In this document: one piece after another, positions 53,601 through 62,600 of the stretch
Layout: every line of letters starts with the position of its first letter
Position numbering within the stretch: the stretch's first letter is position 1
DNA from: Orbicella franksi
Taxonomy: Eukaryota
Reading direction: 5' to 3'
Assembly: GCA_964199315.1 (NCBI GenBank)
Contig: OZ116709.1
Location: forward strand, 12,772,001 to 12,836,000
Length of the DNA: 64,000 nucleotides
Program-made: the position numbers and the translations under genes
The notes under the pieces: model-generated
Database searches by the model: none
What the model saw: the letters and a program-made list of their open reading frames with translations, nothing else
What the model was told of the DNA's origin: nothing

Positions 53601-56600
53601 GGAAAACGACGATCGGAGAGGGGAATATATTTGGAGGGAGAGGTATTAAAGTAAGTTCTTTTTTGGGGGGGAAGGGGGAGGGGATTCTTTTTACGTAAGT
53701 ATGTTAACTTTGAGCTGGGGAGGGGGGGAGACAATAATGGCTTCTTTCCCACCCCATTGTTTTTGTTTGTTTCGTTCGTTAGTTAGTGTTGTCTGTATGT
53801 CTACTTTGGTGAGTACCCCTCCCTCTCGGCTACCGAGTTACTGACCAGCGGCACTGACAGAGAGTTCAGATAGAGTCTCTGCTGACGGATTGTCCCCTCC
53901 AGGTCATGGAAGTTCTCTTTGATCTTGTCCAACTTTTCTTGGATGTCCCGCGGAATTGCTTCACTCTCACGTTCACCGTTTGGCAACCTGCCGCGTGGAG
54001 CGAAAAGAAATCTTGAGAAAGTTATATAAATGTTTAGAAAGCAATGAGAACAACTGGAAGGACTTGAAAAGTATTAAAAAGCTGTTAGTTTTCGGAACTA
54101 GCAAAGAAAGGGAACCCCTGTTACTTAAATAGTCCCTTCATATCGTTTCAAGACACCCCACTCCACTATTTGGGTGAAGGGTGTATGCAAATACAGTCAG
54201 TCAGTCCTTAACAAGTTAAATACTCTTATGTTTCTGGTGAACTAGCTGTTCTTCAGCAGACTTAACATACAAACTTTGTTCGAAAATCTTATCACAGTTA
54301 AAACATGCTAAGAAGCACTGGGATCCTGCATATGACGGCTGTAAGATACAGCTGTTATGCGGGTTATAAACAAGAATTTCTCAAGTTTATGTAGAAATAG
54401 TGTAATACTTACAAGGCGCTGGAACTGTGAGCATTTCTGATTAGCCAGTCACCAGTCAGAGTCGCTGTCGTGAGCAAAGGCTTATGTTTACTGATCTCTT
54501 CACGACAGGCCTGTAAAAACAGCGAGCATTGTTAACCACCGAGTACAGAGTACTACCTTATCTCGGTAAATAATTATTTAAATAGATTCTATGAATGGGA
54601 AAATAATGGAACTCGATCATAACGCCGAAGAACATTACAAGAACTATTCCCCGTGTGGAATCGACGAGTCAGTACCCGCGGCTATACAGCTTCTCTGAAA
54701 GCGCTATACTCCTATTCATGGAACATACGGGTGGTAAGGCGCTATCGAGCAGAGGAAAATTAATGTTACCATCCTTAGGTATTGGATGCTCATTAACACG
54801 TTATAAAGATTAATAAGAATAAAAATGTTCATGAAACCAATGGTCTTACCTCGAGCTCTTCAAGTCGTTTCTTGACCGCCTGTCTGTCAGTGGGATCAAT
54901 GTCAACTGCAAGTAACTCTTCCTTCCTCCCGGCAAACTTTGCAAGCAGCTTTTCCACTGCAAGTTGGAACTCAGCTGCTTTGCGCATGTGCTCTTCGTAA
55001 TGCTCCTCAAACCGACTCATCTTGATCTTCAGTGCATCCACCCGACTTGACAGCGCATCCATTTGACTTCGAACCGCTGCCATGTCTGTTGACGGGTCTT
55101 GCAGACTCAGGAGAGCTTCGCCAGACGAGCGCTCTTTATCGGCCGCGTTATCTAAAGTTGACTGTAAATTCTGCAAAGAGCAATATAAGCAATATTATAT
55201 TCGCTGATCTTTATTTAACCACAAGGCTTTAATAAGCGGTCAAGGACTGCAAAGTCCAATATTTTGAATTGTCACGTACAGTCCTATATAAGCAAACCAC
55301 GTCAATGTGGTGAAACATGACGGAAGTGAAAGTTAACTATGTACCTCATTTATGTAAGTTTTTCACACAAATGTTACAAGTTGTGAAGTTTAATTGTATT
55401 TAAACAAAACCGCTTTTGACTTTGATTTTTATGTATTTTATGTTTTCGGCATATCCAAGTGTGTGGCACTAAGAGTTGAAGAACTGTTTTTATCCAGCGG
55501 CAGGTACCCGTGTCGCAAGACGAAACAAACCGTCGCTTTTAGCCAGAAATCATCTTGCAGCTGGTTTCTGCTGGTAAATAACGTGATTTAAAAATATTTG
55601 CTTTAACTGCTCACAAAAAGATACACACTTTAAGTGCCTGTCATTTTTTTTATTTCTGCTTTATTTTTTTCCTCTGACAATGTTTACTTAATAATTGCAA
55701 CCCCTGCTATGTCTGCCCACGATCAAGAAAGATTAACATTTGAAAATCTCTAATCGCATTCGTTTGAATTTCAATATGCCAATTTTAACTAACATATTTC
55801 CAAGTCAAATCGACCTAATGTAAAAACCAAGCAATTGCTGCCAAGTTGGCTTTCAATATTTAAAGACCAACTATCAAAACCGTCGACTGCATCACTGCTA
55901 AAATAAGAGCACACCTCCAAACGAAAATAACGCGGCTGCAAGATTCTGATAATATTTTTCCGTGCCTACCTCAAGTCGAAAGTGAAATGACTTATTGCAT
56001 ATTCGTTTTCCCCCAGCCTGCGGCTTGCCGTCGCAAAAATTATGATCCGACGGCAACGAACGATCTGTTGGAAGCGTAACTAGTGCAGATGACCTTGTAG
56101 TTCTCACGCATAGAGGTTTATTCAAAACTCCTTGCCAAATTGTTACGGAGCGAACATGTTTATCTGGTGCTTCTTCAGACACCACGTTACTTTCCAGATC
56201 GAATGCGCGAGATTTGCCGTTTGATGATTTTTCTATAAAGCATCCACAAGTAGATCGAATCTTTAAATTTGTCGGCATAACATGCCCAACAGGATTTACA
56301 CTGTTCTCAGTTGCAGGCCCAGCAAATCTTATAAACGTTGTTCCATTCCCGCGCCAGTTTGATAAATAGCCTTTATTCCGATCGCATGAACATTCCACGG
56401 TTGAACACCATAACCTTGTCCGCAGACCGTGTTTGTCAGCAGCTTCATCTAACTTGCTGCAGTTTTTCCTCGGGCGGTTGGCGTTTAAATTGCAACCACG
56501 GCATCCACATTCTGGAAGATTACTTCGTTTCTCTTTGTTAGACATTTCTAAACGCCAGTAATTAAGTCCAATGTTTTAAGTCGGTCCCGAGGAACACGTA

Positions 56601-59600
56601 ATACGAGTAAGTGATCGAGTTTATCATACGCATGATTTATATCAATAACTTTTTCCATTCATTCGCTTGGTCGCGGGAAAGAAAACGATATAACCTTTTG
56701 ACGAAGAGTTAAAGCGATGGTTTGAAGACATAATTTATAGATAGATTCCTGGTTGGATTACTGGTCACTGATGACTCGCTTTTCCCAAAACAATCGAGAG
56801 AACCGTTGTGTCTGCGTGAATTTCCTCCTCAAAAACCTGCCACTTAATTATGCATTCGCAAGCTCGAAATTTACATTCGAGACAAGCTCGCTGTCATTGT
56901 TGTTATGGACAGTCCTGAGTTAAACAAAGAAACAATCATTTCCGTATAGTGTACTCCGTTAAACAGTAGATCGCAACAAACAAGCAGTATTCCTGCAATC
57001 CCACTGAGCTGGCAAACTGCGAGAATTTAATATCACTTTTTGAACAACGCGACAACAAAAATCTCGCCGTATTTTTAGTAAAAATATTTTGTCGCCAAAT
57101 CCAGCGCGTGCATGGTGACGTGTTTCTATGAATACACGTACTGTACGGTAAATAACATTTAAATATTGTTTTAAGCAAATATACCAGTGTTTAAAAAGCT
57201 TGGCCAGGCGAATTGTGAAAAAAGGTAATTACCTATGTTAATAAAATTTTCGCTACAAGATTCGAAAAAGTGCACAGTGGGCATTACTTCTAATGAAAAG
57301 CCATAATTAATTTTTGCAGAAGGTAATCTGTTTTCCAAAATGTAAAGAAAATATTATGGCTGTCACGAGACCAATATAAAAAGCAAGGGCAAAAACAATT
57401 CATACGGCGAGAAAACAAGTTACACACCAGTCTGAAATAGGACAAACAAAAGCACATTGCCTTGTTCGTTTCACCAGTATACGGTAATACACACAAACCA
57501 AACGTAAACAAAAGCTTTCATTGCTTTCACTGGCAACAACTTTGATTACAATTCAGACACTTTCCTTCCAATTAGTTCTTTTCTTGCGTTTCCTTAGCAA
57601 TGAAAAGAAATAGTTTACAATGCACTTTTCTTCTGCCAAAAATATCTATTGAATTACGAGCCATTACAGTATCAACGGCAGGAGGTGAAATTGTTCTCTA
57701 AATTAGCCAAGAAAAGGTTTTACATAATTACAAACTAATTCTACGCTTCTCTCCCCTAACACGAACAAATGCTCACTTATAAAACTGTGAAAACGAAAAC
57801 TCAAGTGACATATACCAGAAAAAAGAAAGCGATTCGTTCACTAGATTTGATCAATCAAGAATAAATCGATATTGTAATGAACTGTCTTAGAGGCCATGGA
57901 AATTTCCATTGATCCGTATTCCTGCTAAGGAAACAAACCTGTTTAAGCTTCGAGTCATTTATTCTACTCTACTCCAAGGCGATTACTTATCTTTGTTTTC
58001 ACTTTTTTATATATCTTTGTTTTTACTTCGTTTCCGAGCAAACAACTTAAATTTAAGAAGCAGCGCACGTTAACCTATCACGTGGTCTGCAGTTTGTCAC
58101 TTTTTGTCGCGGTTTAGGCATTTTAATATTTTATCGCGGGTTCTTTATTTCTAATGAAAAAGAAAGCAATTGCTACAATTTCCATTAACCTAAAGATTAC
58201 CACCATAAGGTATGTTAAGTATTTTCACGATGCCTTCAGCTTTGTAAATAAGAAACTATTTTGAAAATGGAATTTAAAATTCAGAGAAACTTCTCTTCGT
58301 TTATCAAACATGCACAAAGACAGCTTAGGTTTTTTGCACTTTCAAAAAGCAAAAACAGACAATCCAAGTGGCAAAAGGAAAGAGTGAAACAACAGCTACA
58401 AATTAACTCTCGCACATAACCGTACAGAAACAAGCGAGTGAAAGCGAGACGGAGTGCTGCCAACATTCTTATTATATATTCAGATTTAGACCCCGTCCAC
58501 AAGTATCCGGATATTTGTGAATCCGCAACTTTTTCTTTCCGGATTCAAAAATTTCCCCGTCCACACGTAGCAAAAATATCCGGATTCGCTGCCGAATTCG
58601 CCGGATGCCGCGTGTGGACGGAAGCCGTATCCGGAAAGAAAAAGTTGCGGATTCAAAAATATCCGGATACGTGTGGGCGGGGCCTTAAACACCTCAGGAT
58701 TAGTGGAAACGGCTTTTTAAGAAGGTGAGGCAGCCTGGTTTGTAAAGTATACTGCAACACGCGTTTTCCGATGTGTCGAAATTACAGAATGTTAAAGCAA
58801 GGCTTGAAAAGTAATCCTTACGCTGAAACATCTACTTCTCAAGACAACAACAGAATAAGTTGATCTAAATTCACTTTAACTTTTGCTGTACGAAAAACGA
58901 AGTCCAGGCTAAATGAACACGGACCAAAGTGGAGCGGTTTTCAATCGACTATCGCCTGAAGGAACTGTTTCCTTGTCCTTTGTGCGTACTTTTTTTCCTG
59001 AGTTCACAGCAAACAGCGAAACCAAAAGTAATTATGGCGTACTTCACGCGTTGTTCCCGCGCTTGGTAACGGTAACACCTTTTTGCTTCGATTTCGGATC
59101 GGCCCATAACGTTGTTCACTGTGATAGGCCAGATGCGATTCACGCTACAAATAAGTGGACAACCTTACCTTAATCTCCTCAATTTCTTCCTTGATGCTTT
59201 CTGGCTCAGCCCCAAATGCTCGCTGCGTATTCAGCTGGTCTTCCACCTTAGACATCACTTGTGCCAGCTTTTCCAAGTCATTGCAGTATTCGTCGGCTAG
59301 AGGCAGCACGTTTTCCAAGGTCCTTCGTCGGTCAGCGGTCATATCAACGATGCTGCTCAATGCTTCAGTCACGTGATGTATCTCCCTGGAGAGGTCCTGT
59401 TTGTCGCCTGGTTGTGCGTTCTGTACCAGGATCTCGCTGACTTTGGTGAAGTTTTCGATGATAGGTGTACGGTCAGTTATTTCGTCTTCAATGTTCTGAG
59501 AAAATAAAGATGATTCTATCAATAAAATAGTAGCGGTGCATCTTTCTTGTGGTCTCCAAGAATAGCCACACACTTGGGTTTCATCTAAACTTGAGAGGTA

Positions 59601-62600
59601 GAACCACTCTTTGGGGGGTGACGTTTTACTCCAGCAGTGGAAAGGTTAAGTAAATACGTATGTCAGGATTTCTGCGTCAGTCGTGTTTGTTTTTAAATGA
59701 ATATTGGATCATTACCATTTTTAACTGTTAGGATCCCGAGCTACTTCTCATCGTGACTTCCTTCACAACGATTTGCAATTTGCGACAGGACAACGTTTGA
59801 ATTATCCGTTTAAATTGTTATTTGCATTTAGCAGATTAATACTAAATTGACTCGGTAAATTAGAGGATAAATTTTGTAAATAACTAACAATTGAGCATAG
59901 CTAGGCTGATGAAACACCTTTTGTTACAAGAAAAGATTATTATTAGCTGTTTAAAAGCTATAATTACACAATTCACATGTTTTAGAAGAATAACATATTT
60001 AGTTCAGTTGTTAATAGGCTAACGAACGATTCTTACAATCACGACAGAAAGGCATAAAGAGAAAATATGTCGACTTTTAAGTCTAAATGAACCCAATGTG
60101 AACGTTAAGAGATTATCAAAGCTTAATGAGCAAACAAGTGCATATGGGTGGACAGTGAAAACGTGGAACGGTCGCGTAAACTACAGCTGATGCCATGGAT
60201 ACTTGGGTACAACGTGCAAACAATGCTCATACAATTTGTAAATGATCAAGACTAACGAACACAGTACGGAGTGTGCAGATCGAAGAATGAATGGGTGCAC
60301 GAACACAAAGAAAATCGATTCTGTTGGAACCAGAGATGATGTATTAGAGTATCAACGTACAAGCACGTGTCGTGTATAAATGAATATGTTTGAAGAGGAC
60401 AATACATAAAGGAGATATGTTGAGAGAACACTTGCACTGAAAGAACGATGAACGTGAAGTTAGCAAGGGGACGGTCAGTTTGAAGCTCAAACGGCAGGTG
60501 GATGAAGCAATATGGCTAGCAAACAATCCATAAAACCTTTCAAACACACATCACTAACACAACTTATTACTCTGAAAAAGAAAAAAAACTGGGTTAAACA
60601 GAAATAAAACACAAAGCGATGTACAGGGTGCTGTTACAAGTGCATAACGTGTTCATATTTACTGACCACTTTCACCAAAACCAATCATTAATTGGTACAA
60701 TAAGATGACACTGACAGCCAATGACATGTGATTAAATAAACACCAGCCACTGTGGACAAAATGTAAAATGACACAGTGTGATGTGCAAAAAAAATAAAAA
60801 CAATATCAAAAGAATGCTTGGTGTACACATAACGTAATAGATCAGCTTTATTTTATTGTTATCATTATTATAACATTTAGATCTTGTTATTTAATTGACA
60901 ATATAAAATAAGAACGGAATAAATGTTTATTACAAGAAGGTCAGTCTTGGATTCATGCTGGTAAAACTCTCCTCGTGGAGAGAGGTAGTTTGTTATTTCT
61001 TAGAGTGGAACCACACGGTCCCGATTGCTTATTATTTCGTCAAGAACGTTCAATCGATCGCATTCTTTACAATTGGGTGATTTATGTTATTTACAGATTA
61101 TCAGCTTTAGAGTACCATCTGCTGTCCTTATTTTGCTTGTTTTTCTGTGACAATGAGCCACCATAAGACACTACGTTGCTCGTTAAGCATGCAAGCGACG
61201 ACCACAAATTCCTGTCTCTTAAAAAAGGTTTCACCTCATAAAAACACACATCTACAACGATGGTCAACAGTACGCTACGTCTCCTGTCACAAGCAGAAAC
61301 GATGCAATTCTACCTGGCATGCAATTGTCATGCAATTTCTCTCAACAGCATTGACAGCCATCATGCAAATCTACACACATTCCATCTGACAGGAATACCT
61401 TGATCTGTTGCAGCTGGTCTTTGATTTCATCCACCTTCCACGAGACTGGCCTCATCCAGCTCAGCGTCTTCAACGTGACAAGCATCCACTGTAAGAAATT
61501 CTCCAGAACAAAATTAAACTGCATGTACCTCGAGCTGTAGATAAAAATCATCGACTTGTGCTCTAAAACATACTGATACAGTGTTTCGATGATAACGAGG
61601 TAACGTTGTACAACTGTTGTTTCGTATGGAATGGACTCTCTTCTGGGAGATATTGCTTGCATCTGAGTGAAAAGAACAGTTTCAGGTGTAATCGCCTCAA
61701 CACTTTCTATTTCTTTCCTTGGAGCTACTTCTTCGGTTACCTGGTACAGTCCAACAGGCTTATCTCTTTCCTCAGACAAGACTCTTCGCTGCACGGTTGT
61801 TGTCGTCGTTCGTTTTACGATTCTCTTTACTGTAACACCATTTTCATCAACATATTCTTCGACCAATTCATCAGGAGAAATGCCTTCTCTGTCTTGTACA
61901 GGAAATTCCACCGCCGCTGGCTCTAGTTCATGGCGTTGTCTCCTAATAGTTGTTCTTGTTGTTGTTGTTGTGATGCTTCGTTTCACGATTCGTCTCACAC
62001 GAACGCCATTCTCATCAGTATACTCTTCAACTTCCTCTTGTGGCTCGTCGTCGGATAGTGCAACAGGAAATTTAACTTCCGCTGGTTCGGTCCGTTGACC
62101 TTCTCTTTTGATACTGGTTGTTGTAATGGTTCTCCTGACAATCCGCCTAACACGAACTCCGTTCTCATCAACATACTCCTCAACTTCTTCGGGTGATTCA
62201 TCTTCCATTCCCTCGATTTCAGGAATAACTATTTCCCGATTCAAAGTTGCCGAAGGAACTCTCTCCATTACGTCATCGTGGTCAAGATCTTCCTTTAACT
62301 CTGGTTTTGTTGACTGCGACGGCACAATTAAGAAAGAAATGTCTCCTGTAGGTTGTCTAGGTTCTTCTGATGCTGGTTCACTCTCCTCCATCCATTCAGG
62401 AAGAACAACTTCACGTGTTTGCACTGAAGGAACAACATCATCAGAGTCAAAATAAACAGGAGCTGCTAACTCAAACATCTTTGCACCTGGACCGTCCTTT
62501 GCTTCATCAACAGATGTACGGATTACACTTCTTGTTGTAATGGTTCGCCTCACAATTCTCCTCACACGAACGCCATTTTCGTCAATATATTCCTCGAAAT

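Follow-up and report, generated by a model that had tools for sequence, protein, structure and literature searches.

An intron of the spectraplakin gene of the coral Orbicella franksi contains a conserved coding exon of 192 codons, which we consider, with a probability of roughly 0.6, to be an alternative first (5') coding exon of the gene, joined to the spectrin rod. The intron lies in a 64,000-nucleotide (nt) stretch of contig OZ116709.1 (assembly GCA_964199315.1, positions 12,772,001 to 12,836,000), hereafter the window, in whose own numbering positions are given unless another locus is named. The exon occupies 55970..56545 on the minus strand and, as far as sequence can tell, is a genuine one, with a conserved ATG, a conserved donor, a frame compatible with the gene, a conserved position in the gene and conserved non-coding flanks. 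A preliminary description of this DNA, made from the letters, had singled out the corresponding open reading frame (ORF) and proposed that an internal promoter makes from it a spectraplakin isoform with a new N terminus.

That the exon encodes protein can be seen from the way it varies between coral genomes. In plain DNA alignments of six loci, the length of every insertion or deletion (indel) within the exon is a multiple of three (13/13), as against 3 of 43 in the 800 nt upstream and 9 of 36 in the 520 nt downstream. Frame 1 of the exon is free of stops in all six loci while the other five frames hold 1-15 stops per locus, and in the flanks every frame is interrupted (9-21 stops per locus in the upstream 800 nt and 5-15 in the downstream 520 nt). 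The ratio of nonsynonymous to synonymous substitution rates (dN/dS) lies between 0.29 and 0.66 in all 36 pairs that can be formed from nine loci, and third codon positions are the most changeable in nearly all of them. Synonymous divergence (dS) of the ORF matches that of the neighboring spectrin exon (54849..55170), with values of 0.85 vs. 0.80 between the window and locus L003 and of 0.44 vs. 0.46 between the window and locus L005, while the dN/dS of the spectrin exon (0.07-0.21) corresponds to 3-5 times more protein-level constraint than in the ORF exon. Since its indels are in frame, stops are absent, dN/dS is below 1 and dS resembles that of the neighboring spectrin exon, these comparisons identify the ORF as a coding exon whose peptide evolves fast yet is selected, with purifying selection apparent across coral assemblies.

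The same patterns bear on the idea that the open frame arose by chance or is incidental to a conserved non-coding element, which we regard as very improbable. The flanks are indeed as conserved as the ORF or more so, and there is no recognizable domain, no confident structure prediction and no junction read in the data described below. However, in-frame indels are confined to the ORF, substitutions follow codon positions, with dN/dS below 1 in every pair, and the ORF is intact in relatives, with no stop in its frame at any locus, even where protein identity falls to 37%. Moreover, Markov simulations of this intron gave an ATG-initiated ORF of at least 192 codons in 7 of 10,000 runs, a chance of about 7e-4. 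Such a length is rare for a single intron, yet dozens of ORFs like it are expected genome-wide (497-Mb genome), and the significance of this one rests on its conservation rather than on its length. In terms of substitutions, indels and stops, the alignments effectively refute a non-coding origin.

The exon is not confined to O. franksi. A search of 5.8 billion proteins returned 20 homologous ORFs (54-98% identity, 195-262 aa), and eight others, more distant (down to about 32-37% identity), came from a profile search against 1.8 billion cluster representatives; no name and no Pfam domain is attached to any of the homologous ORFs. In all seven loci with long flanks (L003, L005, L007, L008, L012, L015 and L016), the ORF is found on the same strand and at the same intron position, the order being a giant open exon, one rod exon, the ORF and the subsequent rod exons. 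The distance from the ORF to the following rod exon, of 114-124 codons, is 0.6-0.85 kb in six of the seven and larger in L012. This test of position drew on long-flank assemblies only; the contigs of L004, L006, L009-L011, L013 and L014 are shorter (1.1-7.3 kb) and were left out, with no contradiction from them. The start is conserved (M1 and MSNKEKR...), while the most distant syntenic locus, L015 (L015:5300-6520), keeps only the core, equivalent to residues ~62-192, and has its start at another Met. No counterpart of the Cys-rich first ~60 residues could be detected in L015, and these residues are partly deleted in the homologue P0042. A transposon origin, which the preliminary description had raised as something to exclude, is rejected: the ORF occurs only once in its own genome, whether the protein or 1.5 kb of DNA is compared, no transposon-type domain was found on it in Pfam, and its position in the gene is conserved across genomes.

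The identity of the host gene is read from what lies downstream of the ORF. The downstream ORFs of the window encode spectrin repeats, for example seven repeats in a 1217-codon exon, and an exon encoding a GAS2/GAR domain is found 7 kb beyond the window start (C12:12765058-12765177, minus strand, 78 bits). Because spectrin repeats and a GAS2/GAR domain are encoded on the same strand, the host gene is, by its predicted domains, a spectraplakin, and it continues into a spectrin-repeat rod just as the preliminary description had anticipated. A search for a KASH match found none, and was equally silent in its control genomes. The actin-binding and plakin parts of the gene lie outside the 64-kb window.

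Within this gene, the ORF extends from its ATG (56545-56543) to a stop at the far end of 55898..56545 (minus strand), which corresponds to 215 aa, and the 192 codons are those counted from the ATG to the donor GAG|GTAGGC, the final exon base being 55970. The intron that contains it (55171-59168) has 38% G+C, and the ORF 42-47%; the preliminary account of a 192-codon ORF in a 4-kb AT-rich intron, ending at a phase-0 donor that matches the acceptor at 55170, is thus borne out. The upstream constitutive exon (59169..59497, minus strand) closes on a whole codon (...ATT AAG|GTAAGG), and its donor normally joins 55170, skipping the ORF, as seen in an RNA joint and in pieces of contigs. The next constitutive exon of the spectrin rod (54849..55170, minus strand, 107 codons) has a phase-0 acceptor, and the ORF exon also ends in phase 0, which makes the two frame-compatible; spliced reading into the next exon would give ...FHFRLE|NLQSTLDNAADKE.... 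The known downstream acceptors on the minus strand are those of rod exons only, and the nearest, at 55170, is the proposed acceptor for the alternative exon. The proposed intron leading from the alternative exon to this shared exon (55171..55969, minus strand) has conserved non-coding blocks packed in 55450-55969.

The donor of the ORF exon (55962..55972, minus strand, GAG|GTAGGCAC, phase 0) coincides with the end of coding constraint. The consensus RAG|GTRRGY is present at the aligned exon end in all nine DNA loci, in the variants GAG|GTAGGC, AAG|GTAAGC, AAG|GTAGGG and, in the very distant L010, AAG|GTGAGT; judging from the alignment, the switch between E and K and the changes at +3 to +6 preserve the donor consensus, not the amino acid. 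At the protein level, [EK]-V-[GSD] is found at the donor in all full-length sequences of a set of about 115 cluster members, and the tails that follow are 3-70+ residues long, continue in three different frames and vary even within one 90% cluster. As judged from these sequences, coding constraint ends exactly at the donor. A candidate acceptor 65 nt after the donor (...TTATTTTAG|CAG) was rejected, since it is not conserved in L012.

How the exon ends also bears on the possibility, in our view an unlikely one, that the ORF belongs to a separate gene nested on the same strand, which would have its own short mRNA and encode a stand-alone disordered protein unrelated to spectraplakin, either unspliced, with a length of about 195-265 aa and a tail that varies, or joined by splicing to a small terminal exon inside 55171-55969. 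Such a gene would fit with the fact that all assembled contigs and database proteins with the ORF are unspliced at the donor, and with the representation of the ORF in poly(A) libraries, and the strongly conserved 0.5 kb past the donor could then be its 3' untranslated region (UTR). However, the tail frameshifts both between and within species and has no conserved C terminus or stop, the downstream block keeps no open frame, each one being interrupted by stops, and no AATAAA poly(A) signal is conserved downstream of the exon, the candidate near 55665 included. Furthermore, a donor consensus kept through nucleotide changes in nine of nine loci is needless for an unspliced gene.

At the other end of the exon, the sole open in-frame extension upstream of the ATG is 10 codons long and, as the preliminary description had it, no phase-0 acceptor lies inside it. 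The extension is closed by an in-frame TAA (56576..56578, minus strand) within a cross-locus conserved motif, TTAAAACATTGG; the upstream in-frame stop previously reported is therefore real at this TAA, while the TAG that adjoins the ATG is out of frame. The base at -3, earlier given as A, is in fact G, though still a purine. Within the 800 nt upstream of the ATG, no acceptor-like AG in a pyrimidine-rich context is conserved in all six loci. Since the tails shift frame without a conserved stop or C terminus, the donor is conserved and no upstream acceptor is, a 5' coding exon with a used donor is the simplest reading.

A variant of this reading, to which we give little weight, is that a real exon, joined to the rod by splicing, is preceded by others: transcription would start farther upstream, at another internal start or at the main promoter, one or more upstream segments, non-coding or interrupted by stops, would be joined to a non-conserved or missed acceptor, and translation would (re-)initiate at the ATG. 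Alternatively, the exon might be a regulated poison cassette of the long transcript. A simple 5'UTR would not be expected to contain as many ATGs as the highly conserved 0.8 kb upstream does, which could be understood in this way. Yet both the absence of a conserved pyrimidine-context AG and the shortness of the upstream extension argue against an exon preceded by an acceptor, and protein-level selection on 192 codons would be superfluous in a poison cassette.

RNA was placed on 54750-59650 from two poly(A) raw-read runs (X22 and X24) and two contig runs (X1 and X10). The only joint to appear in this region is the constitutive 59169->55170 (minus strand, GT..AG), which skips 3998 nt and is supported by reads of X24 as well as by contigs of X1 and X10. 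Other observations weigh against the ORF being an alternative first exon of spectraplakin. To begin with, no 55970->55170 joint, the split reads for which the preliminary description had hoped, occurs in the four RNA runs, although a form below ~20% or specific to a cell type would escape, since sensitivity is low: X22 has no useful coverage, exon depth is only 3-6x in X24, the one raw-read poly(A) run of use here, and rare forms are lost from assembled contigs. An X1 contig spanning 55143-58471, with a depth about 8% that of the exons, continues unspliced through the donor, in X10 the ORF is covered by an unspliced contig no deeper than elsewhere in the intron, and the X24 poly(A) reads on the ORF amount to one ~34-nt piece, in 55898-56061. 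All of the roughly 115 database proteins that carry the ORF are the unspliced read-through form, and no protein of >266 aa with this N terminus is found among the 1.8 billion cluster representatives, inside whose clusters isoforms could nevertheless hide. Finally, the window's conserved upstream block holds 13 upstream ATGs, which imply either a transcription start within about 80 nt of the ATG or inefficient translation; the transcription start, if real, is probably close to the ATG. The internal-promoter isoform originally proposed is thus upheld as regards a selected exon, a conserved ATG, donor and position and a compatible phase, and is not upheld by a joint in the RNA.

In an index search, four poly(A) RNA-seq runs of one study contain 0.60-0.76 of the ORF's sampled words, while the same four are missing among the runs with at least 0.62 of the surrounding 2.5-kb stretch, a hint that these libraries contain more of the ORF than of its flanks. 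A degenerate 38-nt pattern for the junction had 0 matches in JGI metagenome and metatranscriptome contigs, and the constitutive joint, searched for in the same way as a control, likewise gave 0. The elevated depth of X10 over the ORF was considered as evidence and rejected: the contig spanning 55615-57041 has a depth of 21.5 vs. ~11 for its neighbors, but the part of the intron that adjoins the upstream exon reaches 20.2. One long profile match, P0050, proved spurious, being a translated tandem repeat.

Further observations concern the transcripts themselves. Of the X24 read with the ~34-nt piece, only that piece falls on the ORF exon, at its far end, and the remainder maps elsewhere, as would be seen with a spliced read or with a chance partial match; a single read is below the threshold at which joints are reported. 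Two JGI metatranscriptome contigs of 2.1 kb, L013 and L014, carry the ORF unspliced and run through the intron into the 55170 exon; they begin about 730 and 600 nt upstream of the ATG, respectively, equivalent to window positions ~57277 and ~57149, the latter adjoining the conserved motif TATTTAAAT. The coral metatranscriptome contigs of X1 and X10 contain ORF variants at window positions 56162, 56341, 56370, 56441 and 56514, of which three are nonsynonymous (P11Q, G59D and T69A) and two synonymous (at A35 and D128), too few for a test of selection.

The exon is embedded in conserved non-coding sequence. A block of ~1.9 kb (57350-55450) can be aligned across distant loci while the remaining intron cannot, and the ~0.8 kb upstream and ~0.5 kb downstream of the exon that it includes are non-coding and more conserved than synonymous sites. 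In 57045-56746, identity to the distant L003 and L005 is 0.74-0.88, which exceeds that of the ORF and is well above the expectation from the synonymous rate. The upstream block (56546..57350, minus strand) is a candidate internal promoter, enhancer or 5'UTR. Its conserved motifs include TATTTAAAT at 57165-57157, CACGTCAC at 57122-57115 and the POU/homeobox-like GAATGCATAATTAAGTG at 56857-56841, and other conserved motifs across 56546-57350 and 55450-55969 are TATGAGCAGTAAAGCAAATATTTTTAAATCAC and TGACAGGCACTTAAAGTGTGTAT. An Rfam search of the whole intron gave no match. We infer from their conservation that the flanking blocks are candidate promoter or enhancer elements. The CpG-containing sequence reported upstream of the ORF exists, with an observed/expected ratio of 1.2-1.34 over 55750-57500 (0.87 for the whole window), but 57750-59250 also has 1.1-1.35; a distinct CpG island upstream of the ORF was accordingly rejected, the ratio being similar in the remaining intron.

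Farther upstream in the intron, at 58480-58720, lies a palindromic repeat of ~200 bp that resembles a miniature inverted-repeat transposable element (MITE), with 80 matches and 272 first-look candidates in its own genome. Many of its copies, the one in this intron among them, match both strands, at 85-95% in one orientation and about 70-77% in the opposite one, and its RNA depth is 742-961 vs. 10-40 for the intron. It is present in the orthologous intron of L008 and not in those of L003, L005, L007 and L012.

The 192-residue peptide corresponds to no known domain. It is basic (31 K+R vs. 18 D+E) and rich in Ser and Asn, and contains the 12 Cys noted in the preliminary description, including CGCRGC, VECSC and CGC. 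Seven of these 12 (C13, C15, C18, C52, C54, C102 and C171) are well kept, each in 18-21 of 22 sequences, the first three lying in PECGCRGC, which is flanked by K/R. The best-conserved core, residues 62-150, is marked by the motifs GTFIxFxGP, SGCFxEKxxDGKSRAFDL and EYFRSVTIWQGxLNKP. The preliminary description had recognized no domain, and we likewise obtained no usable match in Pfam (with the ORF and 22 family members), in PDB sequences (with a family profile) or in the ESM Atlas. AlphaFold2, given an alignment of 22 sequences, predicts a largely disordered chain (pLDDT of 42) with one weak hairpin at 102-116, and the head contains no hydrophobic segment. The metal-binding N terminus suggested earlier finds no backing here: since there is no domain, pLDDT is low, only 7 of 12 Cys are conserved and the Cys-rich first ~60 residues are missing in L015, a classical metal-binding domain is unlikely. 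S-acylation (palmitoylation) of the N-terminal CGCRGC cluster is possible, going by the motif.

As an alternative first exon of spectraplakin, the ORF would work as follows. Transcription would start at an internal promoter in the 4-kb intron, somewhere within the conserved block 56546-57350, and translation at the ATG at 56545. The exon donor, after 55970, would be spliced to the phase-0 acceptor of the rod exon at 55170. The product would consist of a lineage-restricted head of 192 residues (basic, Ser/Asn/Cys-rich and mostly disordered) followed by the spectrin rod, the EF-hands and the microtubule-binding GAR end, and would be devoid of the actin-binding domain, the plakin domain and the giant repeat exon. 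We infer the use of the 55970->55170 splice, the position of the promoter and the function of the head, which may be targeting or docking via short motifs. A more specific and rather doubtful version of this scheme is that the head arose as a novelty in the coral lineage and retargets a spectrin rod able to bind microtubules but not actin, by S-acylation of PxCGCRGC or by docking via the core motifs, under a dedicated and deeply conserved internal promoter/enhancer cluster that would be active in a single type of cell (neurons, cnidocytes or calcifying cells, for example).

Spectraplakins connect actin, microtubules and membranes, and the ends of their isoforms determine their partners. A conserved start past the plakin region would thus give corals a form with only the rod and the microtubule-binding end, equipped with its own 192-residue head, and, if an acylated or docking head and a dedicated promoter are both real, this would amount to a spectraplakin isoform of a new class, controlled by a regulatory module of its own. 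The conserved non-coding surroundings, of about 1.3 kb, are a candidate cell-type-specific promoter/enhancer that might be useful for coral transgenics and single-cell atlases. More generally, comparison across assemblies can establish an unannotated exon where RNA data are thin.

How does such an exon compare with known systems? Spectraplakins have multiple promoters that give rise to alternative lead peptides, as in the A-, B-, C- and D-type Shot isoforms of Drosophila and types 1, 2 and 3 of dystonin/MACF1; D-type Shot is without the actin-binding domain and probably also without the plakin domain, and dystonin leads have putative myristoylation/palmitoylation sites or a transmembrane segment (bioRxiv 10.1101/122010). 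The coral exon would resemble these cases in that alternative starts put different leads on a common rod and microtubule-binding end. Unlike in Shot and dystonin/MACF1, the coral start would lie far downstream, past the giant repeat exon and the first rod exon, and its lead, known from sequence comparison, is 192 aa long, conserved in many corals and matches no known lead. The flanking conserved non-coding block further sets the coral exon apart from known spectraplakin leads. Outside this family, the dystrophin isoforms Dp260, Dp140, Dp116 and Dp71 and the short nesprins are N-terminally truncated, tissue-specific proteins made from unique intronic first exons in the rod region, and their unique N termini are very short, from a few to about 30 residues. 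The arrangement proposed here for coral spectraplakin would be like that of these short isoforms, with an intronic first exon in the rod region and an in-frame splice to downstream repeats, while differing from them in that the head, in a different gene family, comprises 192 residues under protein-level selection of their own.

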